From Chara braunii (Eukaryota; Plantae; Charophyceae), in the NCBI GenBank assembly GCA_003427395.1, contig BFEA01000020.1, forward strand, positions 1,051,123-1,115,122: a stretch of DNA of 64,000 bases, read 5' to 3'. The position numbers were made by a program, and so were the translations under genes. Under the pieces are notes generated by a model. That model did not search any database. It was given only the letters and a program-made list of their open reading frames with translations, and was not told the origin of the DNA. Each line of letters opens with the position of its first letter. Position 1 is the first letter of the stretch. Positions 24,435-52,422 of the stretch are shown one piece after another.

Positions 24435-26926
24435 AAAAAGACACACTAAGAAAGTAGAAGGAAAGGGATAGATGGGGACAAGAAACAGGGAGGGAATGGG
24501 TAATGGTAGAGATAGAAGAAGAATCAAGAATGACCTATGCGACACACGTGATCAGAGAGTCAGATGGATATGAAGAGAGGTGAGATTGTCCGAGAAAGCA
24601 GCAAGTAAAAGATTTTGAGTGTCACGGAAAAACTAGAAAATTATTACAAATGGACCAGGATTTCGTCAGGAGTATTTTAGGCATTGGAGTCCGAAAAAAT
24701 AATCCGCTCATGGGTGACCAAGACGAGCTTTCATCCTAAGTCGTCAGCACGAATAATAATGAATTGAAGATGACTCACAAACAGTTCTGCAACAGTATTG
24801 CTCAAAACCGAAGCCTACCATAATGAGAGAGCATAAAAAAGACTCCTCTAACTCACAAAAATTAAGGGGAACCAAGTCATTAGCATCGCGCATATCATTA
24901 CTTCAGTCCTGAATAACAATGCAAGGAACGATTGTCATTGGCGCCATAGGATCGAAAGATCTAGTGCAGTAGTCGATGGAAACTCAAACTATAGAAATAC
25001 TAGGTCCTGGATCCTAACACCTCACCCTTTCAACAAGAGATGCCTTAAGAAAAGACGAAGTAACTCAAATCCCCAAGACATCGTAAGAGCACAAAGCCAC
25101 CGAGTTGAACTCTCAACAGGTAACGACAAATACAATTGCCATTAATTCCTAGTTAGGAAGGAAAAAGCACCATCGGCAAAGGAGTTTGGGGGAGAGCACA
25201 CCAGGACCCCATTCAGCAAACCCCGAACGAGAGCTTATTAATGTTAGGGAGGATAGAATGAGAAAATCGTAATCCGATCACCATTATTATCCCAATCACT
25301 ACCATGGTGAGGGAGAAAGACAGAAAGATAACGACGATGGCAAAGACTATCGCTAAGTGCAAGAAGCGCTGGCAGGCGACCTCAGGAGAATCATCAGGGA
25401 GACATTGAGAAGTGGGGAGGGGTATGGAAGAAATGAAATCATTACGCGCTCGGAGCAGGAGGGCAAGGAAGGAGGAGAGCAGTATGCAAGTAAGGATAGC
25501 AAAGAGAACTGAAGAGGATCGTTGGAAGGAACCCATGTTGTGTCGTTATTAAGTTGAGCACCTTCCGCGTGCGAAGAGGGGAGTGGAGGAATTCATAGAA
25601 GAGGGAGAACAGCAACAAGACCGACGATGGCCTACGGAAACGAGGAATTCAAAAAACGCCAGAGTAGCCAGTAACATGTCGAAGATCGTGAAGACTCCCA
25701 AGAAGACGGATGAATAATCCATGGCAAGCTTGATGACTAAAAACACCTACTGAAGGCGCGAATCCATCAGCAACTCCTACGCCAAACATGCACGCAACAA
25801 CACACAGCAAATGAGCGATCATCTCGTTAGACATCCATCATACATGATTGGGGGCAAGAAAAAAGCAAGTAAGAGAGGGGAGATGGAGGCAGAAGGGGGA
25901 GGGGGAAAGGAGGAGAAAGAAAGAGAAAAGAAGGAAGAGGAAAGATTCTTCCAAATCGGCCAAGCGACCCCAACGTGTCGACGAAACCAGCGAAAGGGGG
26001 TTGCCAGAACAGTCCCTAAAGATTTTTCGCCAGCGTCTGCCAAACTGGCTCATCAGGGGAGTGATACCCCTTGGTTATCGTTCTGAGATGGGAGGAGTAT
26101 GAGAGAGGAAAATAGCAAAGGAAATGAGGCAACAAGGCTAGGGAGGGGAATGGAGGAGTAAAGGGAGGAGGACGGGGGGAGGGTGGAGGGGCAAATGGAA
26201 GTGGGATTCATTACCATTGTCGCGCAGGAAGAGGAGGCTGCCGACATGTCCACTTAGGAGGAGGGGAAGGAGGAAGTCGCCAATCTTAGTGCAAATATTG
26301 CCACGTAATCCAGGAACAACCGCCCACAGAGCTGTCGACGCACAGTCGCAGGAAACCACACGAGCGCTACGAGGTAAAATCAACCAGCGCATGAAACCTC
26401 ACAAAGCGGCGGTAGGATAATACGAATAGCTGGGCGGGAATCAATGATGAATCGGCGCCGCCATTCGCATACACCCCCGGTCGCAGATGGAGAGAGGGTA
26501 ATCATACCCGGGGAGCCTAAATAAATAGTATATGGACCGGCGGAGAACTGAGCGTCGGTTGAACAAAGCAGAAAGACGACCTTGGGCCGCAAAAAAAGGG
26601 GGGAAGAGAGGGAGGAACAAAACGAAGGGGTGGAGGAGCGAGTGTAAGGGCCTAAATTTTGTTTTTTTGCGGTAAAGCATGGGGGTACATGCCCAGTTGG
26701 CTGAAGTCTTTTCAGCAGGTTGTTTTGCGACAAAGTCGGGCCTCATAAATGTTTAATTTTTTATTTACTTATTGAGAAAAATTACAGGGGAAAGGGGGGG
26801 AAAAAGGGGGGGGAGGTTAAATTCTCCTTAATATTTCGGGGTATGTACCAGTATATTAATCGGAAGGGGAATAACTGGTAAAACACCAGATGGTGGTGAT
26901 CAAGTAACCATTGTAAAGAGTGAGCA
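24435..26926 (-). repeat. Downstream direct repeat of the Penelope-like element
   Basis: Copy of 31347-33865 with a ~29-bp deletion near 24535. Bordered by (GT)n at 26927-26970 and abuts gypsy gag at ~24430. Confidence 0.9.
26005..26085 (-). ncRNA. Type I hammerhead ribozyme, second copy
   Basis: UCCC-CUGAUGA-GCCAG..CUGGC-GAA-AAAUCUUU-A-GGGA. One substitution breaks the stem III palindrome. Confidence 0.8.
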
Positions 26927-26971
<45 letters not shown>

Positions 26972-27126
26972 CCCTCCCCTGTCTCGCTGGCGAGGAGTCT
27001 AGGAGGCGGGCAACGGGTACCCGCCTCATCAGGCAAGTACCCGCCAGCCACCATCACAGTCCTGCCGGAAGGGACTGAAACGACAAGCAACAACACACAT
27101 TACGCAAACACATCTCAAATTATAAT

Positions 27127-30100
27127 TTAAGGAATAGGGAGTAGGGCAGCAACTCTCACCTTAAACTTGCGAATGGTACATTCCACATCCTCACGCGGTG
27201 TCATGAACTTAGAATGAGAGTTAAGGACCTTATACACGCAACTGAGGCACTTCCTGAGACAAAAGTCATTATTAATCATGTCGACAACAACTCTTAGAAT
27301 CTCAGGAGCAGCGTGCATAGGTCTAGAGCATAGAACCAAGATGATGGAGACCTGGGGGATGATGATGTTCAATGATTGTTGTTCATGCCTGTTGGACAAA
27401 AACTTGACATACCTTGCGATTGGGAAATCAAGCAACCTTCTTTTATCGAACTTTGTTGTGAAAAATTCGTCGGACGTTTCCGAGAGGACTGTGATCTTCG
27501 AGTTTAGGAACTGGGCTTTAAGCCCATAGGTATTGCCAGAATCATCTGTAGTAAAGAGTTCAGTTTGATTTTTAATTTGAATAAGGTGCAAAGGGTATAA
27601 ATGAAAAATATTAGATTTCGATCTCTCTTGTTCAGGATCAAGGAATCTTAAGATGGAGGGGTTATTGATGCAATGCAGGTCATCGATATACCTGAATGAG
27701 TGCTTAAAAACGGGGAGGATCCAGAGAGCACCATTGTCAATAATTCTCATGATTAACAAGAATTTGTATTTAAAAAAATAAATGATGCAAAATGAGGGGG
27801 AACAAGGAAAGCGCATCGGAATACCTTGTGTATGTTTCCATATATCACCTCCAAGGGAAGTGAAACTTCTATCATGGACCCATTGCATAAGGGATAACAC
27901 ATCCTTCTTGCAGAGGGAGATAACGGACTTCGGGATAACAACATTTTCTTTGCGTAGGGAACAAACCACATCATCATTCCTCTTGAATCTACATCCAATG
28001 AGAGTACCTAACTTTTTCTTCTCCAATTTCTAGGCAATATCGAGAAAGAATCAGATGGCTGCAGGGAAGCCATCTTCATCATTATCAATGGGAATGGTCT
28101 CAAAACAGCGCGTGATATCTGCAGAAAAAAACAGAGTAGACTTTAGAGGGAAGATTATAGCAGTAATCCTGGACTGCATCGATGGACCACCAGATGGAGG
28201 TATCGATGCCATGAAAGGCTTGCAGGCGATGGGTAAGTTCCTTGCATCTAGATTAGACCAACAGAATGAGCAATTTGATGATGGCATCACAGATCTGCGA
28301 CGCAGGAGAGAAAAACAAGTCAGTAGCATTGGTCAGTCATCTGAAGGATCTTTTATGTTGTTTGTAAAGAGCCACTAAGTATGACATTTTTCGCTGGCCT
28401 GAAGGGATTTTCGTTGAGATGCGATTCAGAGAAGATTCTGCTTCAGCGAAAATCAGATCAAGCGAGGATGAAATTTTCTCGAAATCTGAACTATCCAGCC
28501 TCTCCAAAACCAATTTCCTAATGAGGTGAATGCAAGTGAAGGAAGAGGTAGAAGAAGCTTTATCCGTACCGCTGACGAGGAACCTGGAAGTGAGGAATTA
28601 TAATTCCTTCTTCGTAGAATCGAGGGAGAGGAGGGAAGGAGGGTCCCGATGCTTAGGTAGAGAAGAAAGTTGGAATTTTATTATGTTAATCACAAATTCC
28701 CTAGTCCTAGTTTTAACAGCGGGGGGGGTGAACATTCTGGAGTTCACCATTCCAAATATCTCATCCCAAAAAGCTAAAAATTCAAACAATGCTAAGGCTA
28801 AATTCCTAGGTTGCAGTGAGATGTGATTAAGACCTATTTTTAGCAGGGTTGAAACCTTCTTGTTCGAGGAAATAGAGGGATCAAGAGAAACAACGTGGGA
28901 GGAAGAGGGGGGGAAGGGTTGGGGAAAGTCGATGGATTCCGAGAGGTGAAAGGGCAAGAATCTATGTGAAGAGCAGGGGCAGGACACCGAACCCGCATAG
29001 GTAGACAACCATTCTAACAAGACAAAATCCCTGAATACACAAGATGGTTTGTAAACAACCGATTCAAGCGACCGAGAGTACGTCCATCCGATAACCACTG
29101 ACGCTAGAAGGATAATCGCGGAAGGAGGAAAAAAGAGTTCAAAGGTCTTCTCCACGATAGCCCTGAAGTTGACACCTTCCATAGCCTTGTTGGCGAACCT
29201 CACGTGGAAGTGGAAGTCAGCTTTTGCTAACTCGGCTCCCACCCATTTGAACCTTCCGAATTCATCTGTACGAATCTGCCCCTCCGATACGTGACACAAA
29301 GAGTTGACAACAACAAACTGGTAAGCTCAAGCAGGAAACAGCGAGGCCTTCACGGCAAACCTGTTTCTCGGGCTGCGTCTGAGGTACTTGGCTGAGGTGG
29401 AATTCGCAGACTCCGTCTGAATAGTAATTGTGGATAACGGAGGAGTTCCATGAACGCTTGGAGATGCTTCGCAGTCCGCTGCCACAGTAGGGTCCTCCTC
29501 AGTAGCCATAGCCACCGGCCTGATGTAGTACGACAAAATAGTGTTGGACTGAGGCTTTGGAAGTCGCTCCTCCCTCAACCTCTTTCTGGACTTCTTCGCA
29601 TGACTCTTGAGGTATTTGTCCGGGAGAAGGAGGCTGGCCATCTTTCGTGGAAAGTTTCTTGCCATAAGGGATTCGTCATCCATAATGGTCTCCTGTCGTC
29701 TAGCAGGATTGTCGATGATGGCATAAGCCATTCTCTGCATGATGAAACGCATCTGGCAAAACACTACTGTCGCTAGCACCGAGGCTCTCCAAGTGGTTTT
29801 CAGGAAGTTCCGCATTGCCCTCATTCGGGCGCTCATAGTAGGAGCGACAGGAAAGAGGTGCTCCAGATTGGCAAGGAGGTACCAGAGAACATTATCAAAC
29901 CAAGTAATGTTAGTTTTGCAATCCTTCTTCCTAATCTCGAGGCACCGACATTTCAGGTAAGGTCTCCCGACGTTCTAGATCCGTTTCAACTCCGGAAATG
30001 GCCCAGCGCCTCTTGGGGTGCAGAAACCACGAATTGCTAGGGCAGAGGTTGACTCTGAGCACTTGAGAGGATCAATGGATCCAACCGCGGGCAGTTTCAT

Positions 30101-31024
30101 GGCATCCGCAGTAAGCGGATAAAAACCCTTAATCTGTTTCGTATTCTCAGCTAAGGCATTGTCGTCGCACAACTCTATCTCAGCTGGGAAAAGGGAGGCT
30201 AGGAACCTGTATGCGTTGGAACTAATCGGGGCCGAGTGGTTGAAGGTATCCATATCCCAGAGTTTGTAATCAATCTCCATGGACTCCGACTCGATATAGC
30301 GAGAGGGGAGGAGAGGAAGGAAGGCATTTCGATAGTATTTGCCAACCTCCTTTCTTTTCGATTTGGTAAGATTCAACATCAACTGCTCTTTGGACTCAGC
30401 AACAAACTTCTGGTGAAACAATTTCTCCTCCTCAGTTTAATCCAATTCTTCCTCTGAGTCCGATTCTAGTTGGTTTTGATCCTGAATCGGAACAGCGACA
30501 AGTCCGTCGTGGAAGGCAGACTTGACAACCCACAAATCGACAAAAACATTTTCCTTCATGGCTAAGTCATCAAGAATGGAGGCTTCGAATAGCCTATCAT
30601 CGGTAAAGACATCTGCAACACCTTCAACTAACGCTCTCGAAAGCTCGGGGAATTTCTCCCTGTCATACGTCGAACAGCACAAGATATCTGCCCAATCGTT
30701 GAATGAAAGGACAAAGATAAGCGGGGGGAATTGGGGAGGGACAATGACCGAGTTAGCTCTAACAAACTCCATAACCTTTGGACCAGCCACGGAGATGAGA
30801 GCTTGAGCAGGGCATGAAGGAACTTTGAAGCCATCCAGCTAGGAGAGATCGTTTCTCACCAAATCCGCATACCATCCGTTCCGGGTGAAGGAGGGTTTCT
30901 GCACATACGGAACAACAAAGAATATAAGAAAAGGAACCAGCGGAAAAAAACGAGAGACAGGACTAGTCATGGATATCATTTTTCCCAGAGTAATTGTCCA
31001 CATCCGCATTAATCGCGATGTCAT
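27127..31024 (-). pseudogene. Disrupted ~1300-codon Penelope-like reverse transcriptase polyprotein
   Basis: ORF pieces starting at 31024, 30790, 30421, 29836 and 29299 share one frame. Reading through stops gives SCPCSSH, KIGLNH, TDKA..SFTC, YLVALYKQHKRSFR and IWWSID. After a frameshift at the A run ~28125-28131 come SADITRCFETIP, QGIPM.FPCSP, FRYIDDL and AQFL. About nine in-frame stops. Confidence 0.85.
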
Positions 31025-31346
31025 AGGTTTCTCAGACTTGACGAGGGGGAGTCGACCCTCTCGATGGCAAACCGTAAGGAGTTATCTATTCGTGTGTATG
31101 TGTGTATAGTGAGATGAGTCCACCCCATCATGAGACGAGGCAAGCTAAGTTTAAAAAGAGACACATCACAACAAATGCAGAGGTACTGGACAAATTATGA
31201 TTCGCACGAATACTAGACGTATATCCAACAAACCACGTCGTAATCAGTCCATGCCCAAAAATCGTCTATGTCCTCTTCAAATCTTTGCACAAGATATCTC
31301 AAAGTCTATAATAATTTATAGGAAGGAGGCAGAACAGCGACATGGG

Positions 31347-33863
31347 AAAAAGGCACACTAAGAAAGTAGAAGGAAAGGGATAGATAAGGACAAGAAACAG
31401 GGAGGGAATGGGTAATGGTAGAGATAGAAGAAGAATCAAGAATGATGGAGAAAACGTGATATTCAATCCAATGAGCTATGCGACACACGTGATCAGAGAG
31501 CCAGATGAATATGAAGAGAGGTCGGATTGTCCGAGAAAGCAACAAGTAAAAGATTCTGAGTGCCACGGAAGAACTAGAAAATTATTACAAATGGATCATT
31601 ATTTCTGCAGGAGTATTTTAGGAATTGGAGTCCGGAAAAAGAATCCGCTTATGGACGACCAAGAGGAGCTTTCATCCTAAGTCGTCAACACGAATAACAA
31701 TGAATTAAAGATGAATCACGAACAACCCTGCAACAATATTGCTCATAACCGAAGCCTACCATAATGAGAGAGCATAAAAAAGACTGCTGTAACTCACAAA
31801 AATTAAGGGGAACCAAGTCATTAGCATCGCGAATATCATTACTTCAGTCCTGAATAACAATGCAAGGAATGATTGTCATCGGCGTCATAGGATCGAAAGA
31901 TCTAGTGCAACAGCCGATGGAAACTCGAACTATAAAAATATTAGATCCTGGATCCTAACACCTCACCCTTTCAACAAGAGATGCCTTAAGAAAAGACGAA
32001 GTAACTCAAATCCCCAAGACATCGTAAGAGCGCAAAGCCACCGAGTTGAACTCTCAACAGGTAACGACAAATACAACTGCCATTAATTCCCAGTTAGGAA
32101 GGAAAAAGCACCATCGGCAAGGGAGTTTGGGGGAGAGCACGCTAGGACCTCATTCAACAAACCCCGAACGAGAGCTTATTAATGATAGGGAGGAGAGAAT
32201 GAGTAAATTTTAACCCGATCACCATTATTATCCCAAAACACTACCATGGTGAGGGAGAAAGACAAAAAGATAACGAAGATGGTAAAGACTATCGCTAAGT
32301 GCAAGAAGCGTTGGCAGGCGACCTCAGGAGAATAATCAGGGAGGCACTGAGGAGTGGGGAGGGGTATGGAAGAAATGAAAGCATTACGCGCTAGGAGCAG
32401 GAGGGCAAGGAAGGAGGAGAGCAGCATGCAAGTAAGGATAGCAAAGAGGACTGAAGAGGATCGCTGGAAGGAGCCCATGTTGTGCCGTTATTAAGCTGAG
32501 CACCTTCCGCGTGCGAAGAGGGGAGCGGAGGAATTCAGAGAAGGGGGAGAACAGCAACAAGACCGATGGTGGTCTACGGAATCGAGGCATTCAAAAAACG
32601 CCAGAGTAGCCAGTAACATGTCGAAGATCGTGAAACCTCCCAAGAAGACGGATGAATAATCCATGGCAAGCTTGACGACTAAAAACACCTACCGAAGACA
32701 CGAATCCATCAGCAATTCCTACGCCAAACATGCACGCAACAACACACAGCAAATGAGCGATCATCGTGTTAGACATCCATCATACATGATTGGGGGCAAG
32801 AAAAAAGCAATTAAGAGAGGGGAGATGGAGGCAGAAGGGGGAGGGGGAAAGGAGGAGAAAAAAAAAGGAAAGAAGGAAGAGGAATGATTCTCCCAAATCG
32901 GCAAAGCGACCCCAACGTGTCGACGAAACCAGTGAAAGGGGGTTGGCAGAACAGTCCCTAAAGCTTTTTCGCCAGCGTCTGCCAAACTGGCTCATCAGGG
33001 GAGTGATACCCCTTGGTTATCGTTCTGAGATGGGAGGAGTATGAGAGAGGAAAATATCAAAGAGAAGGAGGCAACAAGGCCAGGGAGGGGAATGGAGGAG
33101 TAAGGGGAGGAGGACGGGGGAGGCTGGAGGGGCAAATGGAAGCGGGATTCATTACCATCGTCGCGGAGGAAGAAGAGGTTGCCGACATGTCCACTTAGGA
33201 GGAGGGGAAGGAGGAAGTCGCCAATCTTAGTGCGAATATTGCCACGTAATCGAGGAACAACCGCCCACAGAGCTGCCAACGCACAGTCGCAGGAATCCAC
33301 ACGAGCACTACGAGGTAAAATCAACTAGCGCATGAAACCTCACAAAGCGGCGGTAGGATAATACGAATAGCTGAGCGGGAATCAATGATGAACCAGCGCC
33401 GCCATTCGCATACACCCCCGGTCGCAGATGGAGAGAGGGTAATCATACCCGGGAAGGCTAAATAAATAGTATATGGACCGATAGAGAACTGAGCGTCGGT
33501 TGGACAAAGCAGAAAGACGGCCTTGGGCCGCAAAAAAAAGGGGGAAGAGAGGGAGGAACAAAACGAAGGGGTGGAGGAGTGAGTGTAAGGGCCTAATTTT
33601 TTTTTTTGGCGGTAAAGCATGGAGGTACATGCCCAGTTGCCTGAGGTCTCTTCAGCAGGCTGTTTTGCAACAAAGTCGAGCCTCATAAGTGTTTAATTTT
33701 TCATTTACTTATTGAGAAAAATTATAGGGGAAGGGGGAAAAAAAAAGGGGGGGGTTAAATTCTCCTTAATATTTCGGGGTATGTACCAGTATATTAATCG
33801 GAAGGGGAATAACTGGTAAAACACCGGATGATGGCGATCCAGTAAACATTGTAAAGAGTGAGC

Positions 33864-33865
<2 letters not shown>
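31347..33865 (-). repeat. Upstream direct repeat of the Penelope-like element
   Basis: Colinear with 24435-26926 (roughly 90% identical by eye). Bordered by (GT)n(GA)n at 33866-33974. Confidence 0.9.
32947..33027 (-). ncRNA. Type I hammerhead ribozyme (minimal, palindromic stem III)
   Basis: Minus strand reads UCCC-CUGAUGA-GCCAG(uuuggcagacg)CUGGC-GAA-AAAGCUUU-A-GGGA. Stem I is extended by distal CAGAAC/GUUCUG. Predicted UUA cleavage between 32959 and 32958. Confidence 0.85.
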
Positions 33866-33909
<44 letters not shown>

Positions 33910-33912
33910 GTG

Positions 33913-33979
<67 letters not shown>

Positions 33980-36187: not shown

Positions 36188-39100
36188 ATGGCGAGCAAAG
36201 GTCAAATGCGGAAGTTGAGGAAGAAGAACGGGATGGCGGCGGCGTCTGCGAAACTTGTTGACGTTCGGAAATTCGGAGGTAGCGGCACTACCAGTAGCGG
36301 TGGCTGCTTTAATCAGGGCCCTGCGAACGGATTGGCGGGGATTGCTCCCGCGGCGGGAGCGGGTCACCCTCCTCCTCCTCCTCCTCCTCATCATCATCAG
36401 TACCATCAGTCGGGATGCCCATCCAAAGAGTCCGGACGGGACGCGTGTACCACTACTACCACCTCGAACACTACGGGTAATTACAAATACCGAAGTTCTC
36501 AAGATGAGGACGATGGCGGCGCCAGCAGCGCGGGCGATTACTCTGAGACCGAGGACGAAGGACTGTCGGGATACCGACGAGGCGGCTACCACCCTGTTAA
36601 GATCGGGGAAGTGTACAATTGGGGTCGCTACGTCGTGGAGCGAAAGTTGGGATGGGGTCATTTCTCGACAGTGTGGCTGGCTTGGGACGTGACGGCGAAG
36701 AGACACGTGGCCCTGAAGGTCCAGAAGAGTGCGGCCCATTACACGGAAGCGGCCATGGACGAGATAACGCTGCTGGAACAGATCGTCCGCGGAGATCCCG
36801 GCGACGTGTTCCACGTGGTCCGCCTTCTGGACCAGTTCAAGCACAGCGGGCCAAATGGAAACCACGTGTGTATGGTCTTCGAATTGCTGGGTGACAATTT
36901 GCTCACTCTGATCAAGCGGTACAATTACCGCGGCATGCCCATTCCGATGGTGAAGGAGCTTTCCCGCCAAATCTTGATTGGGCTGGACTACTTGCACCGA
37001 CAGTTGTCAATCATTCACACTGACCTGAAGCCGGAGAACGTGCTCTTGGTGCACCCATTGGACCCCTCGAAAGATCCGCGAAAGACATGTTTGAGGCACG
37101 CTAATTACGATCGAGAGAATCAGCAGGATCAGGGTTTTACCGATCAGCGAACAGCGGAGGTGATGACGTCATCAGCGGCGGCGATCGAGCCATCTACTGC
37201 CGCCGCCGCCGCCGCCGGCTCAAAGAGTACAAAACCAATCGCGACGCCCACGACGACGACGATGGGGAAGGGTGGCCGGGAGTTGCGCGAGGATGAGACG
37301 GGGACGGCGAGTTGGGAAGCGGCGGTGATGGAGGAGGGGGGAGCCACAGCAGCAGCAGCGACGGCGGCGGCGGGAGGAGCGGGGGAGGCTAGAAACAGCC
37401 CCACAAGGAAAGGAGTAGTAGTAGGAGGGACAGAGGGGCTGACGAGGAATCAGAAGAAGAAGCTAAAGAAGAAGGCGAAGAAGGCTGGTGCGGTGATGAT
37501 CGGCGGCTCTGATGATGGAAAAGTTACGGGGGGTGGTGGTGGTGATCTTGATGATAAGATTTTGACGACGGCGGCGGCAGGGGGTGGCAAATGCGAGGAA
37601 AGGGGAGGAGGGTTGGCTGGGGGAGGAGACGGAGGACCGATGGCGGCGGGAGAGAGGAGGAACGGGTGCGCCGATCAGGAACGACAAGTAATGGACGGCG
37701 GCGGTCTAGATGGCGAAACGAGATTCGAACTGCTGACCTTAGATAGCGTCGTTTCGAAACCTAATAATGCTACGGCGCCGCCGCCGCCGCCGCCGCCGCC
37801 GTCTTCGACGACGGGAACAAGAAGGAATGGGGAATCATCCCCAAACATAGCTGTTCTTACCCCTCTTTCCCAAACGACGGTGATGGCGACGAGTGCGAAA
37901 GGAGAGAGAGAGGCAAAATTAGCGGCAGCGATGGCGGGAAGAGACAGCGTGATTGTCCAGATGGCGGAAGGGGAAGGGGGCAAGATGACAACAGCTCATT
38001 ACCAGGATTTCGCCGCGGGACGGGCGGAGATCGTTGCGACTGTTCGTGTTAGTAAGGAGGAGGAGCAGATGAAGTTCCTCAAGAAGTATCCCCCCCAACC
38101 TTCTCCGCCTCTATCTTCCCTCCAGTGTAATCATGCACAAGATGGATTTCGGGTAGTAGTAGGAGGAGGAAAAGGAGGAGGCGATAGTGGAGGTGCTGAC
38201 GTGGAGATCAAGGAGGTCGATGATGATGAGGAGGAGGAAAACAGGAGAGGGGGTTTGTTACTTGCCGACGCTGGCATGATTGATAACAACGTCAGCAAAC
38301 TCCAAGCCGTCAACAACAGCAGGAGCCACAAGTCGTCGTCCTCCTGCTCTCCTCTCGAACGCCGCTCGACTAGAGAGGGTTCTTCCACGATAGATTTGAC
38401 CTGCAAGCTCGTAGATCTGGGTAATGCTTGCTGGACTTACAAGCAATTTAGCAGCGATATACAGACTAGACAGTATCGCTCTCCCGAAGTTTTGCTCGGT
38501 GCCAAGTATTCGACCCCGGTAGATGTTTGGTCCTTCGCTTGTATCGTGTTTGAATTGTGCACTGGCGATGTGCTCTTCGATCCCCACAGCGGCGACGGGT
38601 TCTCGAGAGACGAAGATCATCTGGCGCTGATGATTGAGCTCCTTGGAAGAATTCCGAGGAAAGTTGCATCCAATGGCAAGTACGCGAGTTCGTTCTTCAA
38701 TCGCCACGGAGAACTACGACATATAAAGAAGCTGAGATTCTGGCCATTAGACGAAGTTCTGACGCAGAAGTACGACTTCGCGGAGGAGGACGCAAGAGGA
38801 GTCACAGACTTCTTGTTGCCGCTTCTGGATTTCCTTCCAGAACGGCGCGCAACGGCGGAGATGGCGCTGTGTCATCCGTGGCTAAACCCTGTGCCGCGAT
38901 CGATGGCCTCGTCAGCAAAAGAGGAGATCATCAGGGTGAACAAGGGAGAGAAAAGGGAGGAGAAGGTTGTCAGAGCGAAGCGGCAGCAGCAGCAGCAGCA
39001 GCGGCAGCAGCGGCAGGCGGGGGGGAAGGGGGTGGAACAGCGAGTGAAAGGCTTGCTGATTACGGGAAGAAGAAAAGATAGTGAACACTGCTCTGATGAC

Positions 39101-39190
39101 GATGACGAGAGGGACGACGATGACGATGAGGAAGATGATGAGCATGATGATCATCATCATGTTGAGAGAGTGGGAGAGAGGAGGTGGTAG
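36188..39190 (+). CDS. SRPK: SR protein kinase (CMGC, SRPK family), single uninterrupted ORF, 1000 aa
   Basis: Diagnostic motifs in order: YRRGGYHPV, KLGWGHFSTVWL, ALKVQKSA, HVCMVFE, IIHTDLKPENVLL, a long spacer, then DLGNACW, DIQTRQYRSPEV, DVWSFAC, EDHLALMIELLG, HPWL. A kinase domain split by a spacer is typical of SRPKs. Confidence 0.95.
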   Translation: MASKGQMRKLRKKNGMAAASAKLVDVRKFGGSGTTSSGGCFNQGPANGLAGIAPAAGAGHPPPPPPPHHHQYHQSGCPSKESGRDACTTTTTSNTTGNYKYRSSQDEDDGGASSAGDYSETEDEGLSGYRRGGYHPVKIGEVYNWGRYVVERKLGWGHFSTVWLAWDVTAKRHVALKVQKSAAHYTEAAMDEITLLEQIVRGDPGDVFHVVRLLDQFKHSGPNGNHVCMVFELLGDNLLTLIKRYNYRGMPIPMVKELSRQILIGLDYLHRQLSIIHTDLKPENVLLVHPLDPSKDPRKTCLRHANYDRENQQDQGFTDQRTAEVMTSSAAAIEPSTAAAAAAGSKSTKPIATPTTTTMGKGGRELREDETGTASWEAAVMEEGGATAAAATAAAGGAGEARNSPTRKGVVVGGTEGLTRNQKKKLKKKAKKAGAVMIGGSDDGKVTGGGGGDLDDKILTTAAAGGGKCEERGGGLAGGGDGGPMAAGERRNGCADQERQVMDGGGLDGETRFELLTLDSVVSKPNNATAPPPPPPPPSSTTGTRRNGESSPNIAVLTPLSQTTVMATSAKGEREAKLAAAMAGRDSVIVQMAEGEGGKMTTAHYQDFAAGRAEIVATVRVSKEEEQMKFLKKYPPQPSPPLSSLQCNHAQDGFRVVVGGGKGGGDSGGADVEIKEVDDDEEEENRRGGLLLADAGMIDNNVSKLQAVNNSRSHKSSSSCSPLERRSTREGSSTIDLTCKLVDLGNACWTYKQFSSDIQTRQYRSPEVLLGAKYSTPVDVWSFACIVFELCTGDVLFDPHSGDGFSRDEDHLALMIELLGRIPRKVASNGKYASSFFNRHGELRHIKKLRFWPLDEVLTQKYDFAEEDARGVTDFLLPLLDFLPERRATAEMALCHPWLNPVPRSMASSAKEEIIRVNKGEKREEKVVRAKRQQQQQQRQQRQAGGKGVEQRVKGLLITGRRKDSEHCSDDDDERDDDDDEEDDEHDDHHHVERVGERRW

Positions 39191-40449: not shown

Positions 40450-40517
<68 letters not shown>

Positions 40518-41028
40518 TCCCTCTCTGTCTCTGTCTCTTTTCCGATTTATGAGATTCATTATGTATGTTCCTCATGCTGCAAGTGCACTTTTTGTTTTCT
40601 AGTAGTTGGCGGATGTGTGTGGCTGGATCCCGCGCAACCGCGCATACGTGATGCACCTAAAACATAAAATCTGGCGTGTTTCGCTTCAGAGTTTCTCGTC
40701 TCTCCCTGTATTATTATTATTTATTAGTTCTCATAACTTCTCCATGCAGTCTTTTTCCGAAAACGCACTTTTTGTTCGGTAGCTGACGGTATATGCTTAT
40801 ATTATTACGGGGAAATTACGCGGGAGTCGCAAAAACGACTTGTACTTGCACTATGGGCCATTTACGGTGCCCGAAGTGCAATTGCAAATTGTATATTGTC
40901 CCGTAGTGCAATTATTATAACTCGTTTTCGTGACTCTACCGAAGTTACCCCTATTATTATTATTATTTCTCATAACTCTCCATGCACCTTCATTCGGTTC
41001 CGTTCTTTTCCCCTTTCTTTTGTCTGAA

Positions 41029-41048
41029 TGTGTGTGTGTGTGTGTGTG

Positions 41049-41118
<70 letters not shown>

Positions 41119-41185
41119 CCCCCCNNNNNNNNNNNNNNNNNNNNNNNNNNNNNNNNNNNNNNNNNNNNNNNNNNNNNNNNNNNNN

Positions 41186-41265
<80 letters not shown>
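41029..41265. repeat. (TG)n(GA)n microsatellite spanning a gap
   Basis: Seen directly. Confidence 0.99.
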
Positions 41266-41269
<4 letters not shown>

Positions 41270-44260: not shown

Positions 44261-45135
44261 TAAGGCTCTTGGGCGAGGAGAAGTTTTGATGGAACAAGTA
44301 TGCAAAGGAAAAAGCGAGGTTTCGGTGAAAAAAGAGAGAGAAAAGTTTTGGAGAGGGAAAGAAAAGAGGGATGCCGACCAACTGGCCTGGGTCAGTTGTT
44401 AAACCCCTGAGCTGTTTAAAGTACAGACTCAAGCTTGAGCTTCCCTGGAAGCAGTTGAGTGAAATAATTCAATTCTGAATTATGGAACGGCTGGTTAGTT
44501 TGATGATGATATCTCAAGGCCGTCAGATGTATGCCGTGGGGACCAAGAGGGGGAAAACAAAAAACACACTCACCACATGCACAAACGACAAAATATGGCC
44601 GTGCATCTTTCCAATGTTCTAGCGGCAGAGTCATTCTCATTTGGCAAATTTGGTGAGGTGTGGCAAATTTGGTGAGGTGTATCCTTCCATGTTCTAGCAG
44701 CAGATTCAGGGCATACTCACACTGCGACCCCAAATCCGCACATTATGTGAATCCGATTTGCGGTTTTAGGCACGCGGGTGGTCACACTGCGTTACAATTA
44801 CTAAGAGGATAGGGAATTGGTGCTTCGCTGGTCACACATACCCGGCCGTGAAATCTACCAATTATATTCCCCCCCCCCCTTCTTTTTCCCTGCGTTCCGC
44901 ACATCCGCACACCTCAACATTGGCCTGTACATGTCAAGAACTTTCGAGAATGAATTTTGGCAAATTTTCAAAGAAGATTCGAAAAAATAAAAGGGTCCCT
45001 TGCCCTGCGGCTTTCCAGGCTGCTGACAAATGGGCACTTGAATAGTACATTTGGTACTTCGGCAAGTCTGTGTGACCGACCCTCTAGCCTTTTTCTTGAG
45101 AATTTGGGATTATAGTTCCCAGCGTCTCATTCTCA

Positions 45136-45667
45136 GGGCATACTCACATGAGGAGGACCAAATGACCTTAAAATGATAAATCCCAAAATTTGAGTCAGTT
45201 TTCAGGTCACACACAACAGGCCCGCTACCCAAATGTCTCAAACGGTGACCCTTTTGTCAGCGGCCTGCGGGGCAGTGGGAGGACCCTTTTTTGAGACTCA
45301 AATGACCTTTTGAACTTTCCCCGCAATCTTACCTTATTGCAAGAAGTCGTGGACAAAGAAAACAGCCTGCCAGAAAAAGACAAAAAAGATGGACTATCTA
45401 TGTTCTAGCAGTGGATTCAGTCTCATTTTGCACATTTGGAGAGTAGTGCAGCTACGTCGTTTAAAAAAAAAAGAAACTCCATCTACTCTGTTAGTCCTCA
45501 CCAGTGTGACTACCAACACTTGCCCCGAGGGTGAAGTGTGAGGGCTGCGATTTCGCCATTTCTGGACGCAGTCCGCCCGTGTGACCACACGAGGACCAAA
45601 AGTCCCAAATAGGCCTACCCAAATGCCTCAAGATTTTGAGACTTTCTGTCCTCGTGTGAGTATGCCC
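45136..45667. mobile_element. Harbinger-like MITE, family 2
   Basis: TIR GGGCATACTCACA / TGTGAGTATGCCC with 3-bp TSD TCA. Confidence 0.8.
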
Positions 45668-47396: not shown

Positions 47397-47594
47397 TTAA
47401 ACCACCAGTACCTTTCTCAGCTATCAACGCCGAGCCGAAAACTGCCCTGCGCGCCAAAGAAAAACGAACTGATGCGGGCCTCATTTTGGCTGGCACCACC
47501 AGCCATTTCACGCCGGTAGTCGCGGGCCTGCCCGCCTCCCGTGTTAACCGGCGGGCATTTGTTTTTCAAGCAGAGAAAGGTACTGGTGGTTTGA
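47397..47594. mobile_element. MITE, AAACCACCAGTAC family
   Basis: AAACCACCAGTACCTTTCTC / GAGAAAGGTACTGGTGGTTT. Another terminus starts immediately after it, and further ends lie at ~53030 and 54500-54810. Confidence 0.75.
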
Positions 47595-48531
47595 ACCACC
47601 AGTACCTTTCCCCGCTTGGAAAAAAAAAATGCATCGGTTAACACGGGCGTTGGGGAATTCCTGGCACTGCAACGGAGAACGAAATCAGTGGGACGAAGGA
47701 AAACAGGCAAATGGACAACATGACTCGGACTGCCTGGTTGACTCAGCGAGGCCTGTAAATGAATGGGAGAATTGACTTGAAAAGCGTGCATGTGTTTCCA
47801 CATGCACGTGCACACTATGGGGCTCGCTGCACTATAGATTCAAGCTTTTTCTTGAGTGCGGCATGGCTGCACTTACTCAAGAAATGGGCGCTCGAAAACC
47901 TGTTCTAGAGGTGTCAGAACGACTCTAGAAAAGTAATAGAGTCGTCATCGCTCCACTTACTCGATAAGTTTGGTCTAGATTTTTCATTTCCTGAGCTGTC
48001 AGAGTGGAGCACCAGCCTGCAAAGGCGTTTTTTTTTACGGAGGTCCGGAGGACCCTTGAAACGCCTCGGTTTTCCTCGAGTGGCCTTGAGTCTGGACGGA
48101 CAACCCAGGCTGGTGCTGTCCTGTAGTGAAATGGCCGAACTCGGAAAGTGACGGAGCAACTCTAGTAGCTTTTCTAGAGTCTAGAGCTAGTGCGGCGATG
48201 CATAGATTTTAGGACTTCTCGTGACTCTGACAACTCTAGAATGTCTCTAGATTTCTTTCACGAGGCTAGAGTAGTGCAGCGAACCCCTATACCTCAGCCA
48301 GCAAAAAAAAAGAAAACAAATGACAAATGGAAACTGCCAAAAAAGAAAGAGAACAGGTAAACGTCCACTCATAACGTCCACTCAGATCCCGCTGCTCATG
48401 GGGGAGCGAAAAGTTCTTGACATGCTTGCTGTCAGATTCGTCCAGGTATGGCCATACTTGCACCTCACATGTGGGCGAGTCTGACTGCAACCACGTCCAG
48501 AATAGATGGTTCAAGAGAACGCCCTGTGAGT

Positions 48532-48581
<50 letters not shown>

Positions 48582-48698
48582 CACTTTTTTTTTTTTTTTT
48601 TTTTTTTTAAACTAGGCTATATTCTTCTCTCAAATATTTCATCATCCTTCATATTCTTTCAATTCACCTTCACTACCTACCTCTACCACTACTCGTAA

Positions 48699-49152
48699 GG
48701 GCCTCGTTCCACACCACTTGAGTTCAAGAGCTGAGCGGAAAATCATCGTTCCAGCACCCCCCTTAGAGAGACCCGCTTTGTTTTCACCTTTTTGCGTCCC
48801 AAGGGTGTGCCCTTGAAACTCAAGGGCGACACAGCCCAAAAACAATCGCCCTTGAATTCAAGTCACCACCCGGAGGTACCTTGAGTTCAAGTGCCAGCGG
48901 ATACCGCCAGCACTCCAAGTGGGCCTTTTTTAAAGTTTTTTTTGGTTTTTCTTTTTTTTCCAGCAGGCGATCCTGGTCCAGGATTGGTCAAGACGTGGAG
49001 TTCGATTTCAACTTTCAAGTGCAGCGATCCTGTTCAAGGGTTTCCTCAAGTGTACATGGAACCATAAATCGATTAAGTGTAAATTAATCACAATTTCTCG
49101 TTTAGTGTGCACTTCAAACTCAAGTCTTTTCCAGTAGTGTTGAACGAGGCTC
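48699..49152. mobile_element. PIF/Harbinger (Tourist-like) MITE
   Basis: TIR GGGCCTCGTTC..CACCACT / AGTAGTGTTGAACGAGGCTC with TAA on both sides. Confidence 0.85.
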
Positions 49153-50987
49153 TAAGACTTATACAGGGGTCCCCTTTTATTTTTTTTCTGGCCCGTAGCC
49201 GAGGGCCTACTCACACTAGGAGCGAGATCCCACTAGCCATGTATGTGGATTAGTGCGACGGGTGGGGGACAGGTGGGTGGCAGCGTGAAATAGGGAAAAT
49301 AAACGCAAAAAAAGACATTTCATGACCAAACAAATGAATGAAAAACTGCTAAAAAAGAAAAGAAAGTGCTCTTCTCACAGCTGGTGTCTGCTCCAGGCGG
49401 GGTGTCAGATGTCAAGGTATGATTCACTGGCCATGGCTGTGGCAGTCAAGACGGCTGCATGTGAGTGGGCACACGGACCATATTCATTGGCTTCCTTGAA
49501 ATAGGCTGCAGTGCACGCTGTTTGGTTGTTCTGACAGTAATTCTCTTTGGCAAAGGAGGGCAAGAGTAACTCCATACACCATTTGCTCTAGGTGAGGGGA
49601 TAGAACCCTCCCAAACACCTCCCAAACCACAATCAATTTTCAGCAATGAAGCCATTCGTCTTTGCCTTCGCCGTGAGTGAAACGTGTGTGATTTCACAAA
49701 GCAAAAAACTTGGTTGTGATTTCATGCACGTTTGGGACAGCCACAGGACCCCAACAACAAAAACAAAAGAAAAACCTAGTTAGTATGGTCTCCACTTTAC
49801 GAATTGGTGGCAAGTTTGATTAAAATGACCCTTTGGTTTTCATATAAATGGCATGGCAAGTGGTCTGAAAATTAGGGTCTCCGTTAACCTTCTCTCCACT
49901 ACTCACCAAATGTGCAAAATGAAAAAAAAAGGAAAAAAAAAAAAGGAAAAAAAGAAAAAAAAGAAAAAAAGAGAATGAATATTCTGCCGGAAGATGGAAA
50001 GATATTCCTATTGTCTTTTCTGCACGTGGTGAGTAGTGAAAGAGGGCCTAAGTCATTTCTCACACAGCTCTGGACGCGATTGGAGTCAGATTCATTCACG
50101 GGCCTCCCTCCACTACTCACCACATGCACAAAAGACCAAAAATATGGCGGCGTACCTGCCTATATTGTAGAAGAAGATTCATTCTCATTTTACACATTAG
50201 TTGAGTAGTGCAGGGATGCCCAATGTCTCTTCCCTTTCTTGTCTCACGTCCAGAAGCGGGCTGCTGCCGGCACTGAGGACACGGTATGTGCTTTTTTCTT
50301 CCCTTTTTTGTGGAAATGGGCTGCTGACAGCACTTACGAGACATTATGTGCTTTTTACTTCTTTTTTTTTCTTTCTTTCTTTCTTGGGATAATTTACAAA
50401 ATACCCCTATAAGTTGAGATATATGATGAAAAGCTCACACCCCCAATGGTCCATGCGGAAACCAAGTACTCGATGAAACAGATGCTTTCTCGACAAAGGC
50501 TTCTTGGCGAAGGCTCTCAAAAGGTTCCACACACACTGAGCCCGGTTCACGGGTCCGTTGGCAATGTCTGCTGACTCTGGCCGCATTCCTGAGTTGAAAT
50601 TTTCAGCCATTTTTCTGTTGACTCTTCTAGGCTTCGCTGTCTATCTGTGTGTTTTCTCACAATTGTGTGTTCAGTTCCCTCACCCTTCTAATGCACCTCC
50701 ACCGTATTGCCAATCGCGACGCTGGTATGAGTCCTTGGAACGGTGTGTCCAGTTTTCTTACCCTTCTTTCCTCCTAGACGAGTGATAGTCATGAACGATA
50801 GTGTAACTGCCGTTGTGTGTGGACTCATTCCTCGTTTGACGTAGGCGGTACCGGCTGAGTCGTTCGAAGTCTCTGCCGTTGCCTCAGGCTTGGCAGCTTC
50901 GCCCTGGTAAGCTTGCCCATCTCCATCTCCCCCCGCCATTCCTCCAATTCTTCTCCTTTGCCCTCTCCGACATCCTCCTGCCCGCCA

Positions 50988-51062
<75 letters not shown>

Positions 51063-51110
51063 CACACACACGCACACACGCACACACGCACACACGCACA
51101 CATGCACACA

Positions 51111-52160
51111 ATCAGTTTTAGGTATGTTTGTTTTTCCTCTCTTATTGTTTCTTACTTTTTGTGTCTCTAGCCGAGCACCCTCTAGCAGTGCTAAACAGTC
51201 GGTGGTTCCTCATTTGGAGTGCCAACTGCACTCTTAGGGGGGCCGCTCGGTTCGGGATGTCTGTGTTGCCTGTCGCCGCTGTCGGTGATGACGGATGGTC
51301 GTCGGAGTGTCTCCCTGGCTCAGCGGGTGGTGGGAACCAACAGTCTGCAGGGTTCAATCGTGATGTGAGTAGGTCATGTGCTGCTTTGCTCCGTGTTGGA
51401 TGTGGACGTCCTCGTCTGCGCTCCGCTGTTGCCCTGCTGCCTGTCCTGCGTGCTGCAGTCGTTTTTGGCGTTGTGCAGCCTTGTTGCCTCTACTGTGTTG
51501 CCTGGTGCTTCACAGGGTTGCTGCTCGCTGCTATGTTCCGCTTGGGGACAGTCTGCCTTCAACAAAGGTCAAAGGGTTCATGACCCAAACCATCAAATAC
51601 GGAGATTCCGCAGATTGTCGAGGGTTCAGCCTCCTGATGAGTCGGTGCAACTCCGACGAAACAATCTTGTCATCATCAGTTTATTTTTTTTGGTCTTCCG
51701 ATTTACTTGGGACTTGTACTTGTTTATTTATTTATTATTATTATGATTATTTTTTTTTTTTCCGGTTTGCTTGACTTGGTGTGCTTGTGTCCCTGTTTCG
51801 TGTTCTTGCATGTTGTCTGCCCTCCTGCCTCCCCCGTGCCCTCCAGCCTATGCCTTGATGTCCTTTTGCTTGCTTTGCTCTGATGCTTTTCTTGTTTGCC
51901 TGGTCTTGGCATTCTTTTGGGACTTGTTTGTTTTGCTTTTTCGGTTTGCCTGCTGGTGTGCTTGCACGTTGTCTGCCCTCCCGCTTCGCCCATGCCTTTT
52001 GTTTGGCACTTTGGAAAGCTGATCATGGATAACCACGTATGTACGAGGTAGCTCCAATGAGTTAGTAGAGTGGCAGCATACAGTGTTAGTTTGGTTGCGG
52101 CAGGGTGGGGTGTACCATGGGTTCCATGGGGTGCATGGCGAGTACGCCATGGGATGTATT

Positions 52161-52162
<2 letters not shown>
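51111..52162 (+). mobile_element. Candidate non-autonomous hammerhead-bearing retroelement between (CA)n tracts
   Basis: Flanked by (TC)n-AA-(AC)n at 50992-51110 and (AC)n from 52163. Has a central hammerhead, a 3' hairpin CATGGCG-agta-CGCCATG (52134-52151), and no credible ORF. Confidence 0.55.
51612..51667 (+). ncRNA. Type III hammerhead ribozyme
   Basis: AGAUUGU-C-GAGG(guucag)CCUC-CUGAUGA-GUCGG(ugcaacu)CCGAC-GAA-ACAAUCU. All three stems pair perfectly, the core is intact, and the GUC triplet predicts cleavage after 51619. Confidence 0.92.
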
Positions 52163-52200
<38 letters not shown>

Positions 52201-52359
52201 GCACACGCACCCACACNNNNNNNNNNNNNNNNNNNNNNNNNNNNNNNNNNNNNNNNNNNNNNNNNNNNNNNNNNNNNNNNNNNNNNNNNNNNNNNNNNNN
52301 NNNNNNNNNNNNNNNNNNNNNNNNNNNNNNNNNNNNNNNNNNNNNNNNNNNNNNNNNNN

Positions 52360-52422
<63 letters not shown>
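52163..52422. repeat. (AC)n microsatellite spanning a gap
   Basis: Seen directly. Confidence 0.99.

Follow-up and report, generated by a model that had tools for sequence, protein, structure and literature searches.

The window, a stretch of 64,000 nucleotides of Chara braunii DNA (contig BFEA01000020.1), holds a composite Penelope-like element (PLE) of the PLE-X type on the minus strand and, about 17 kb away on the plus strand, a 1-kb element that is called el1 here (Table 1). A 1000-aa kinase ORF of the window is identical to a product of this contig in assembly GCA_003427395.1. Read along the minus strand, the composite runs from (TC)30-AAA-(CA)n through region A, an ORF part, a 3' module ending in GGGGAGGGT and (CA)22 to A', a second copy of region A. 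It is a partial tandem in which 31347-33908 repeats 24435-26970 with 92.4% identity over 2566 nt. Because of this arrangement the (CA)22 at 26970-26927 separates the ORF part from the second 2.5-kb copy, and is an internal tract and not the insertion end that an earlier note on this DNA had taken it to be. At the downstream end of the composite (24435) there is no (CA)n, and a gypsy gag-pol fragment is found instead. Gypsy elements are present in the window.

Table 1. Features of the two elements and of a third compound microsatellite in the window
Feature	Position	Strand	Basis
(TC)30 microsatellite ahead of the PLE composite	33916-33975	-	
(CA)n, imperfect, directly before upstream region A	33867-33912	-	
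Region A (pseudo-LTR), upstream copy, non-coding, with type I hammerhead	31347-33866	-	direct repeat
Type I hammerhead, minimal, with core CUGAUGA, a stem II of 6 bp, GAAA and palindromic helix III AAAGCUUU	32950-33010	-	Rfam, 20 bits, E 6.9
Decayed ORF of PLE-X type, with CxCX8C in the N-terminal extension, a CxC motif and RT	27130-31081	-	7 in-frame stops, one frameshift
3' module conserved in PLE-X, with GC-rich hairpins followed by GGGGAGGGT	26971-27062	-	model R1, fold score, alignments
(CA)22 junction, ORF part to second region A copy	26927-26970	-	
Region A', second pseudo-LTR copy, ending against the gypsy gag-pol fragment	24435-26926	-	
Second type I hammerhead copy, helix III palindrome mutated to AAAUCUUU	26008-26068	-	
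Third compound microsatellite, (TC)n-CC-(CA)10, with gap 41125-41185 inside (TC)n	41029-41265	-	
(CT)34 upstream of el1	50991-51058	+	
(CA)n, partly 8-nt higher-order repeat CACACACG, directly before el1	51062-51110	+	
el1, non-coding 1052-nt element, 5' end AATCAGTTTTA	51111-52162	+	no protein relatives
Hyper-abundant, transcribed part of el1 (5' half and hammerhead)	51177-51680	+	contig depth
Type III hammerhead, GUC cut site, predicted cut between 51619 and 51620	51612-51667	+	Rfam RF00008
T-rich low-copy 3' half of el1, module border at 52000, predicted terminal hairpin	51681-52162	+	
(CA)n after el1, read at 52163-52216 and 52360-52423, gap 52217-52359 inside	52163-52423	+	

The minus-strand element is an old, inactive copy of an endonuclease-less, PLE-X-type Chlamys PLE. 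The stops in its ORF are of all three kinds and the frameshift lies near 28335; RT motifs A, B' and C (YIDD) are present at about 28330-27600 on the minus strand. The earlier call of a Penelope-like element with hammerheads holds. The RT piece matches best the Chara braunii proteins GBG63676, GBG77882 and GBG83558 and the Selaginella EFJ09726 cluster, with E values of 1e-41 to 1e-35, and tblastn matches are colinear over 27193-30382. The SCPCS of the window copy aligns with CQC, CEC and CPC of the relatives (the CxC motif), and its KCRCLEIRKKDC with KCACL..GC and KCKCKKEKSKDC (the N-terminal CxCX8C). No GIY-YIG endonuclease was detected: Pfam gave no match in six ORF pieces of this decayed copy, the GIY..YIG pattern was not found in the relatives, and only about 190 amino acids follow YIDD in the window. 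RT kinship, the CxC motif with the N-terminal extension, the absence of GIY-YIG, and the pseudo-LTR hammerhead with the partial tandem together place the element in the PLE-X subgroup. Hammerhead-bearing, endonuclease-less PLE-X elements in Chara, as well as non-autonomous Chlamys elements, have already been published (Craig, Yushenova, Rodriguez, Arkhipova 2021, PMC8557442). The window element has in common with the PLE-X of Chara braunii and Selaginella described there the closest RT, the N-terminal CxCX1-8C extension, the CxC motif, the lack of GIY-YIG, the pseudo-LTR hammerhead, the partial tandem, and a location in Chara that is genome-wide and not in rDNA; it differs in nothing essential, and the window copy is decayed.

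The two type I hammerhead copies of the window lie 6942 nt apart, and the upstream one is predicted to cut between 32959 and 32958. This ribozyme is kept in 7 element copies from 6 sources (both window copies and five further copies in five loci); its stem II comes in four variants, and its helix III is palindromic. Model R1 scores the window's 3' module at 71.3 bits (E 1e-14) over 26959-27051, and the fold of the 3' hairpin is supported (z -2.2), the hairpin belonging to a module that nine copies have kept. Hairpins, GGGGNGGGN and (CA)n close the 3' UTR in nine PLE-X copies and one remnant (the window and seven Chara loci). These loci were picked for their PLE-X genes, and the (CA)n association is an observation on this set, not an enrichment over a genome-wide background. 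Wherever its start is legible, the repeated region begins directly after this 3' (CA)n. The earlier suggestion of a (CA)n association of the PLE holds for the unit junctions of this PLE group, in the nine copies and the remnant. A (CA)n bias of Chlamys PLEs has already been published (PMC8557442); the main text of that paper does not set out the fixed 3' module ending in GGGGNGGGN and then (CA)n. In two loci (L003 and L007) the entire PLE composite lies within (CA)n: the downstream A' breaks off in both at one internal CA-rich motif, after which comes expanded (CA)n. In L005, A' stops inside the hammerhead, and in L002 it finishes with a 57-nt tail and (TC)36; since these ends differ from each other and from that in the window, the outer 3' junction is not uniform.

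The 1-kb element el1 was found to have no protein relatives over 51111-52162, in line with its earlier description as non-coding. Its AATCAGTTTTA 5' end starts at the same base after (CA)13 at L003:14786, in a copy that is truncated to the first 274 nt and is the sole other copy seen with its flank. The 5' end is therefore at (CA)n in 2/2 copies, while the 3' end is seen in one copy only. Alignment to el1 of 11,004 DNA contig pieces showed that it is multi-copy, as the earlier note had expected, but with a very uneven profile, and RNA reads from two raw-read runs aligned to it as well. Summed DNA contig depth is about 1e5 to 1e6 over 51177-51680 and about 1e3 over 51681-52168, making the 3' half about 100-fold rarer than the 5' half and ribozyme. 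A transcribed superfamily of ribozyme repeats, very abundant in this genome, includes the 5' half and the type III hammerhead; the 3' half is a rarer variant. RNA over the 5' half is strand-biased 10:1, and as the strand convention of the library is uncalibrated, the transcribed strand may be either the hammerhead strand or its complement.

The hammerhead of el1 reaches 46.0 bits (E 3.1e-7) against RF00008, just under the gathering score of 48.5, with the full model matched and all core letters present. Helix III covaries across genomic copies (a U to C change at 51615 goes with A to G at 51664), and we accept the ribozyme as probably real, with cleavage predicted from its sequence. Many genomic copies of the ribozyme family begin at the cleavage site or within 8 nt of it, with breakpoints at 51620-51628 in the aligned DNA contigs and heterogeneous AT-rich flanks, a pattern that the copying back of cleaved RNA would be expected to leave. 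Among the RNA reads aligned to el1, ends were not reported to accumulate at the cut site; a single back-joint contig (51663 to 51621), from what is presumably an RNA run, is too weak a signal to be counted.

How the two elements are related can be judged from their borders and from their bodies. The upstream borders are almost the same, (TC)30-AAA-(CA)n at 33975-33867 on the minus strand and (CT)34-AAA-(CA)n at 50991-51110 on the plus strand, just as had been noticed before. Direct comparison of the PLE with el1 found no sequence similarity, again in agreement with the earlier note. Its further claim of one common architecture needs correction in the ribozyme type, which is minimal type I (dimeric-type) in the PLE and stable type III in el1, and in the 3' hairpin, which in el1 cannot be distinguished from shuffles (z -1.5; 14/200 shuffles fold as well). 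An nhmmer profile of the PLE-X 3' module gave no plus-strand match at the el1 3' end, and the covariance model R1 scored that end at 16.3 bits (E 0.13), level with other (CA)n-adjacent background matches. We favour, with a probability of roughly 0.6, the reading that the window holds two unrelated retroelement insertions that have in common the way in which they join (CA)n, and no common origin.

Of the alternatives, the one that survives best, though it is improbable, is that el1 is the commonly 5'-truncated tail (a solo pseudo-LTR) of an unseen autonomous PLE family whose type III hammerhead follows an internal (CA)n. Such a tail would mirror region A of PLE-X, which always begins at internal (CA)n, and the layout of el1 is that of region A, with (CA)n, a ribozyme some hundred nucleotides in, T/C-rich low-complexity sequence and a CA-rich end; moreover, another Chara type, whose 3' hammerhead is canonical, has been reported (PMC8557442). 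However, what precedes the (CA)n is not the 3' UTR of an RT gene but (CT)34 in the window and a PLE-X A' end in L003, and in about 240 kb of Chara DNA none of the RT genes was found to have a type III hammerhead beside it. Somewhat less likely still, the 1-kb stretch may be a mosaic of several repeat fragments between two (CA)n tracts and not one mobile unit. The roughly 100-fold difference in depth between the halves would fit this, as would module borders at about 51177, 51667 and 52000, contigs that match 52000-52160 alone and continue for 426 to 968 nt beyond, and the L003 copy with its first 274 nt only; yet those 274 nt span the 51177 border in two independent loci, one subfamily runs on past the ribozyme with GTCACAGTCA and a T-run like the window, and (CA)n abuts both ends of el1.

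The earlier note had proposed that the PLE primes at (CA)n and mobilises the hammerhead element in trans. If the PLE-X family as a whole is considered as the source of the RT, this can draw on the joining of both elements to (CA)n with the same upstream junction, on a hairpin that precedes the downstream (CA)n in both, on the el1-like 5' end in L003 that directly follows the (CA)13 closing a PLE-X A', and on the non-autonomous Chlamys elements of Chlamydomonas (PMC8557442). We nevertheless regard it as doubtful, since the two have no sequence in common, pair a minimal dimeric-type type I with a stable type III ribozyme, and do not have the GGGGNGGGN module in common at the 3' end, where el1 scores as background by profile and covariance model, while the known non-autonomous Chlamys elements carry the 3' ends of their autonomous partner (PMC8557442). 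The PLE copy of the window is dead, and with neither sequence, ribozyme type nor 3' module in common, a role for it as the partner of el1 is not supported.

Under the favoured reading of two unrelated insertions, the following route may explain the (CA)n borders. RTs of the PLE-X group lack an endonuclease, and cDNA would probably be started on exposed (TG)n DNA ends annealed to the (CA)n of the element RNA, with (CA)n microhomology probably also setting the 5' junction. Insertions would then come to have (CA)n on both sides, act as seeds of new (CA)n and accumulate in head-to-tail order, and the hammerheads may serve to trim read-through or tandem transcripts. Being non-coding, el1 would have to borrow an RT of this endonuclease-less, (CA)n-priming kind. 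Mino, at (AC)n, and Kibi/Koshi, at (TC)n, are reportedly microsatellite-specific LINEs, known from Kojima and Fujiwara; like the Chara elements they sit at (AC)n or (TC)n, but they are endonuclease-bearing non-LTR elements without ribozymes. Priming between (TG)n and (CA)n would be analogous to the telomere annealing of the endonuclease-less PLEs Athena and Coprina. These and the Terminons (cited in PMC8557442) likewise have no endonuclease, RNA-borne repeats complementary to the primer DNA end, and hammerheads nearby; they anneal to telomeric overhangs at chromosome ends, whereas the Chara repeat is (CA)n at internal sites. A bolder and unlikely extension is that the Chara PLE-X RTs act as an internal telomerase-like system, in which RNA (CA)n anneals to (TG)n DNA ends, templates both priming and repeat growth and makes much of the (CA)n of the genome, and that the same enzymes mobilise in trans a guild of non-coding elements with type III hammerheads. 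If true, those elements would be algal cousins of plant retrozymes, linking the PLE-associated retrozymes of animals with the LTR retrozymes of plants.

Several known non-coding elements resemble el1 in part. MRC1-like non-autonomous Chlamys elements of Chlamydomonas reinhardtii are also non-coding, microsatellite-associated and presumed borrowers of a Chlamys RT, but their 3' ends are common with autonomous families and they have no hammerheads (PMC8557442), whereas el1 has a type III hammerhead and no 3' end in common with the PLE-X copies seen here. Animal non-LTR retrozymes are likewise non-LTR, non-coding, hammerhead-bearing repeats that co-occur with PLEs, with cleaved RNA thought to be the template (PMC7229834; bioRxiv 10.64898/2026.07.22.740005), and retrozymes as non-autonomous PLE derivatives have been proposed for animals (Li, Clavereau and Pollet 2026, bioRxiv 10.64898/2026.07.22.740005). 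Their units are short, lie in tandem and have type I ribozymes related to PLE pseudo-LTRs, in contrast to the dispersed 1-kb unit of el1, whose sequence is unrelated to the PLE pseudo-LTR; with a single type III ribozyme and no tandem unit in the window, el1 was not assigned to this class. Plant LTR retrozymes are non-coding, about 1 kb long and, like el1, from the green lineage, and each of their two LTRs, about 350 bp long, carries a type III hammerhead (Cervera, Urbina, de la Pena 2016, PMC4918200). That el1 is such an element, mobilised by Ty3/gypsy elements, is most improbable despite its type III hammerhead (PMC4918200) and the gypsy elements in the window: it has a single ribozyme and no LTRs, with no direct repeats in or around it, no match with at most two mismatches to the tRNA-Met primer site TGGTATCAGAGC inside 51111-52162, and flanks of (CA)n microsatellite, not a 4-bp duplication. 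With three of the defining features lacking, el1 is rejected as a plant LTR retrozyme.

It is worth noting that the window has assembly gaps at 52217-52359 inside (CA)n and at 41125-41185 inside (TC)n; the same microsatellite lies on both sides of each, so that no frame or element body is affected. The second of these gaps is in the third compound microsatellite, and the 515-nt segment that comes after this microsatellite has no hammerhead. Further compound (TC)n(CA)n motifs are found in other Chara loci, and the motif is not special to the PLE and el1.

The Penelope-like element (PLE) in the window lies on the minus strand and is a composite. When the window is compared with itself, 31347-33908 repeats 24435-26970 (92.4% over 2566 nt, at a spacing of ~6941 nt), and from this repeat and the order of the parts it follows that the (CA)22 tract is an internal junction of a partial tandem. 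The earlier note had taken this (CA)n for the 3' flank of the PLE, which has to be corrected. Such a pseudo-LTR arrangement is typical of PLEs (PMC8557442). The repeated part is a ribozyme-bearing region of 2.5 kb, called A in its upstream and A' in its second copy. Past 24435, the downstream end of the composite, there is no (CA)n; a gypsy gag-pol fragment (22000-24434, minus strand), recognised directly from the sequence by a CX2CX4HX4C zinc knuckle and a 12-residue motif, adjoins the end of A' without an LTR in between. The coding frame of the PLE runs from 31081 to 28340 and, after a frameshift, on to 27130, with seven stops of all three kinds. This broken frame and the 7.6% divergence of A from A' mark an old, dead copy. 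Selenocysteine or an alternative genetic code was rejected as an explanation of the in-frame stops, since TAA, TAG and TGA are all present alongside the frameshift.

Coordinates of the PLE parts, the non-coding hammerhead element (el1) and associated repeats; positions are in the window unless a locus (L) is named
Feature	Position	Strand	Remark
(TC)30-AAA-(CA)n	33975-33867	minus	first in the minus-strand order
Region A	33866-31347	minus	copy of A'
PLE ORF part	31346-26971	minus	
(CA)22	26970-26927	minus	between ORF part and A'
Region A' (second copy)	26926-24435	minus	
(TG)n-rich stretch, window	27090-27110	minus	example
(TG)n-rich stretch, L002	13800-13840		example
(TG)n-rich stretch, L005	14065-14095		example
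Third (CA)n-joined family, L004	3700-3746		
Third (CA)n-joined family, L004	14400-14443		
Third (CA)n-joined family, L007	5890-5960		
el1	51111-52162	plus	(CT)34-AAA-(CA)n on left, (CA)n on right
el1 part	51105-51176		relative summed depth about 2-3e3
el1 part	51177-51608		relative summed depth 3e4 to 4e5
el1 part (ribozyme)	51609-51680		relative summed depth 4e5 to 1.1e6
el1 part	51681-52168		relative summed depth mostly about 1e3, extremes 16 to 8e3

In an exhaustive search, the best relatives of a 300-aa piece of the RT are hypothetical proteins of Chara braunii and a 662-aa cluster of Selaginella moellendorffii (34-43% identity). A search with a length window returned nothing, as it presumably shuts out full-length relatives. 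Using tblastn, the relatives' proteins match the window colinearly across the N-terminal extension and the RT, and the CxC motif aligns with theirs, as does CxCX8C in the N-terminal extension, so that the element is indeed Penelope-like, as had been proposed. Pfam gave no match on six pieces of the ORF, and GIY-YIG was detectable neither in these nor in the relatives, one of which has a weak match to a GRF-like zinc ribbon. The PLE-X type of Chlamys elements, which lack the endonuclease (EN), has been published from Chara and spike mosses with these same RT, CxC, CxCX8C and no-GIY-YIG features (PMC8557442).

Seven Chara loci were fetched through the relatives' proteins; they were chosen for holding PLE-X genes and give no genome-wide statistic. 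Every PLE-X copy examined has ~140-180 nt between ORF and (CA)n, with GC-rich hairpins and GGGGNGGGN at the (CA)n-proximal end. Copies with this 3' module and (CA)n are found in the window, three times in L001, and once each in L002, L003, L004, L005 and L007. A covariance model of the module recovers 9/9 copies with 57-94 bits, as well as a decayed tenth copy before another (CA)n tract (L004:3683-3772). Wherever the sequence is readable, region A begins directly after (CA)n. Upstream of the first A copy there is (TC)n(CA)n in the window, L005 and L001, (CG)n(AG)37 in L002, and the 3' end of another family with (CA)n in L007. Downstream, the A' copies of L003 and L007 both break off at one and the same internal CA-rich motif, which sits at the border of A and ORF; expanded (CA)n comes next, and there the composite as a whole is enclosed in (CA)n. 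The A' of L002 terminates in a short tail plus (TC)36.

Under the canonical PLE reading, which we favour, a full unit would consist of ORF, 3' module, (CA)n and A. The copy ahead of it would be 5'-truncated, at a point determined by microhomology of (CA)n with a (CA)n target. In the alternative reading the unit would have a different phase, with A, ORF and a (CA)n tail. Most PLE-X copies also have a (TG)n-rich stretch just after the stop codon, ~120 nt before (CA)n, and pairing of the two could close the 3' UTR. RNAalifold on a first alignment of the 3' UTR gave a weak consensus (-7.4 kcal/mol); the long-range (UG)n-(CA)n pairing that it proposed rests on simple repeats and is not relied on here.

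Region A carries a small hammerhead. The motif at 32961-33014 scores only 20 bits with Rfam, and at the gathering threshold neither this ribozyme nor that of el1 is found; both needed the E-value mode. The same motif is present in both A copies of the window, 6942 nt apart, and in region A of L001, L003, L004, L005 and L007. All copies retain the core CUGAUGA...GAAA and have a short palindrome for helix III (AAAGCUUU or AAGCGCUU), while stem II exists in four sequence variants, each able to pair. By its sequence the motif belongs to the minimal type I hammerheads known from PLEs, which are thought to act as dimers (PMC7761336). In a single case, the hammerhead itself is where A' breaks off, ~20 nt short of the predicted cut site (L005:15700-15725 vs L005:7751-7791), as would be expected if ribozyme-cleaved RNA were the template.

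A different arrangement is seen in Selaginella moellendorffii (GL377659.1), where PLE-X genes form a ~5.2-kb tandem without (CA)n. The tandem adjoins a 28S gene on the opposite strand, truncated at about model position 1170, in line with published rDNA targeting. The window itself has a eukaryotic 28S rRNA-like fragment at 1990-2330 on the plus strand (Rfam RF02543, 63.5 bits, model positions 2425-2802) in a non-rDNA context; it has no evident link to PLE-X, whose Selaginella site is at ~1170.

The second element, el1, is 1052 nt long and, as the earlier note had stated, encodes nothing: its longest ORF (151 aa, spurious) has no protein relatives, and no other copies could be fished out through predicted proteins. 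At 51612-51667 its hammerhead fits the type III model over the full length (46 bits, E 3e-7); the core is intact and the cut site reads GUC, in keeping with the original call. The (CA)n to the right of el1 is read over its first 54 nt, before a gap (52217-52359) inside the tract. On the left, the (CA)n at 51063-51102 consists of about five copies of the 8-nt unit CACACACG, a higher-order repeat such as might arise when a short template is copied again and again. With no LTR and no tRNA-Met primer site, el1 is not an LTR retrozyme. Just after the hammerhead, UCAUCAUCAG at 51634-51679 can pair with the catalytic core CUGAUGA. In the structure of minimum energy the core is taken up by this pairing and the ribozyme fold does not form, which could mean an off-switch or be due to chance.

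No other copy of el1 exists within the window. Its first 274 nt recur in L003 at 80% identity, where the copy starts with AATCAGTTTTA directly after (CA)13, has no (TC)n upstream and comes next after the end of a PLE-X A'. Apart from L003, ~240 kb of other Chara loci hold no type III hammerhead and no further el1 copy, so that copy numbers from summed contig depth are only relative. In one run, 11,004 DNA contig pieces match el1 at ≥85% identity; single listed contigs have a depth of 7-27. Most family members depart from the window after 51663 and continue with GTTTGTCACAGCCCCTC, by which 51664 becomes G; in the opposite strand of helix III, U to C at 51615 is the most frequent change. Together the two keep the helix III pair, which is evidence of constraint on the ribozyme. 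At 51620, 51621, 51624, 51625 and 51628 there are breakpoints with heterogeneous AT-rich or (TA)n sequence upstream, and thus many genomic copies of related families start at or just after the cut site. In two raw oligo-dT RNA runs, the 5' half of el1 has a depth of 100-480 with a 10:1 strand bias (the library strand convention is uncalibrated), both strands of the ribozyme reach 500-1600, and hardly any reads fall on the 3' half; no pile-up of read ends over el1 was reported from these runs.

That el1 and this PLE form a specific two-part system is unproven. What they have in common is only (CA)n and, as had been noticed before, a similar upstream junction, (TC)n-AAA-(CA)n before the PLE and (CT)34-AAA-(CA)n before el1. 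Against such a system, the two share no sequence (the first reading, too, had seen no obvious similarity), and their ribozymes are of different types, I and III. The earlier note had further seen a 3' hairpin before (CA)n in both. For PLE-X this holds in every copy, but the terminal hairpin of el1 is no better than shuffles, its 3' end lacks the PLE-X module by profile, and the covariance model scores it at 16.3 bits (E 0.13), the same as other (CA)n-adjacent background. Non-autonomous Chlamys elements, in contrast, have the same 3' ends as their partners (PMC8557442). An unrelated third family, with three occurrences, likewise has a hairpin ahead of (CA)n: (GATT)n, a GGGGGAGGGGTC...CCCC hairpin and CACCACCCCT come in this order, and (CA)n follows immediately. 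Elements joined to (CA)n thus seem to form a guild and not just a pair. A third compound tract in the window, (TC)n-CC-(CA)10, opens 40514-41265 on the minus strand, followed by a 515-nt segment that ends at (AG)29 and contains two repeats spaced 240 nt and no hammerhead. (TC)n is recurrent just upstream of (CA)n-led elements.

Within the literature searched, Chara braunii is coupled with hammerheads only in Craig et al. 2021 (PMC8557442), who describe the PLE-X type and find hammerheads in two Chara subclades. A (CA)n bias has already been reported for Chlamys in the same paper; the PLE itself and the bias as such are therefore published, and the (CA)n link of PLE-X, known in outline, is sharpened here. 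Craig et al. also raised the question of how EN-less PLEs find a primer away from telomeres. The fixed 3' module with (CA)n in every copy examined offers a specific answer that can be put to the test, namely that the primer is found by annealing to (TG)n ends. In the view of Li, Clavereau and Pollet (2026, bioRxiv 10.64898/2026.07.22.740005), the non-LTR retrozymes of animals have their origin in PLE pseudo-LTRs; an element from a streptophyte alga that lacks LTRs, is bounded by (CA)n and carries a type III hammerhead is not described in their paper. LTR-less retroelements of this kind in such an alga would widen the retrozyme concept, and they bear on whether hammerheads parasitise or serve PLEs.

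The rest of the window contains several other repeats. A tandem array at 18393-21875 has about six units of ~555 nt with ~90% identity and internal 66-nt sub-repeats. Direct repeats at 57279-58253 and 62850-63799 (84% identity), with a tRNA-Met-like primer site TGGTATCGGAGC at 62839-62850 (minus), probably belong to an LTR retrotransposon on the minus strand. At 36188-39190 there is a 1000-aa kinase ORF that is exactly an annotated Chara braunii product (GCA_003427395.1, contig BFEA01000020.1), and at 47538-47647 a near-perfect 110-nt palindrome with weak miRNA-precursor-like matches on both strands.
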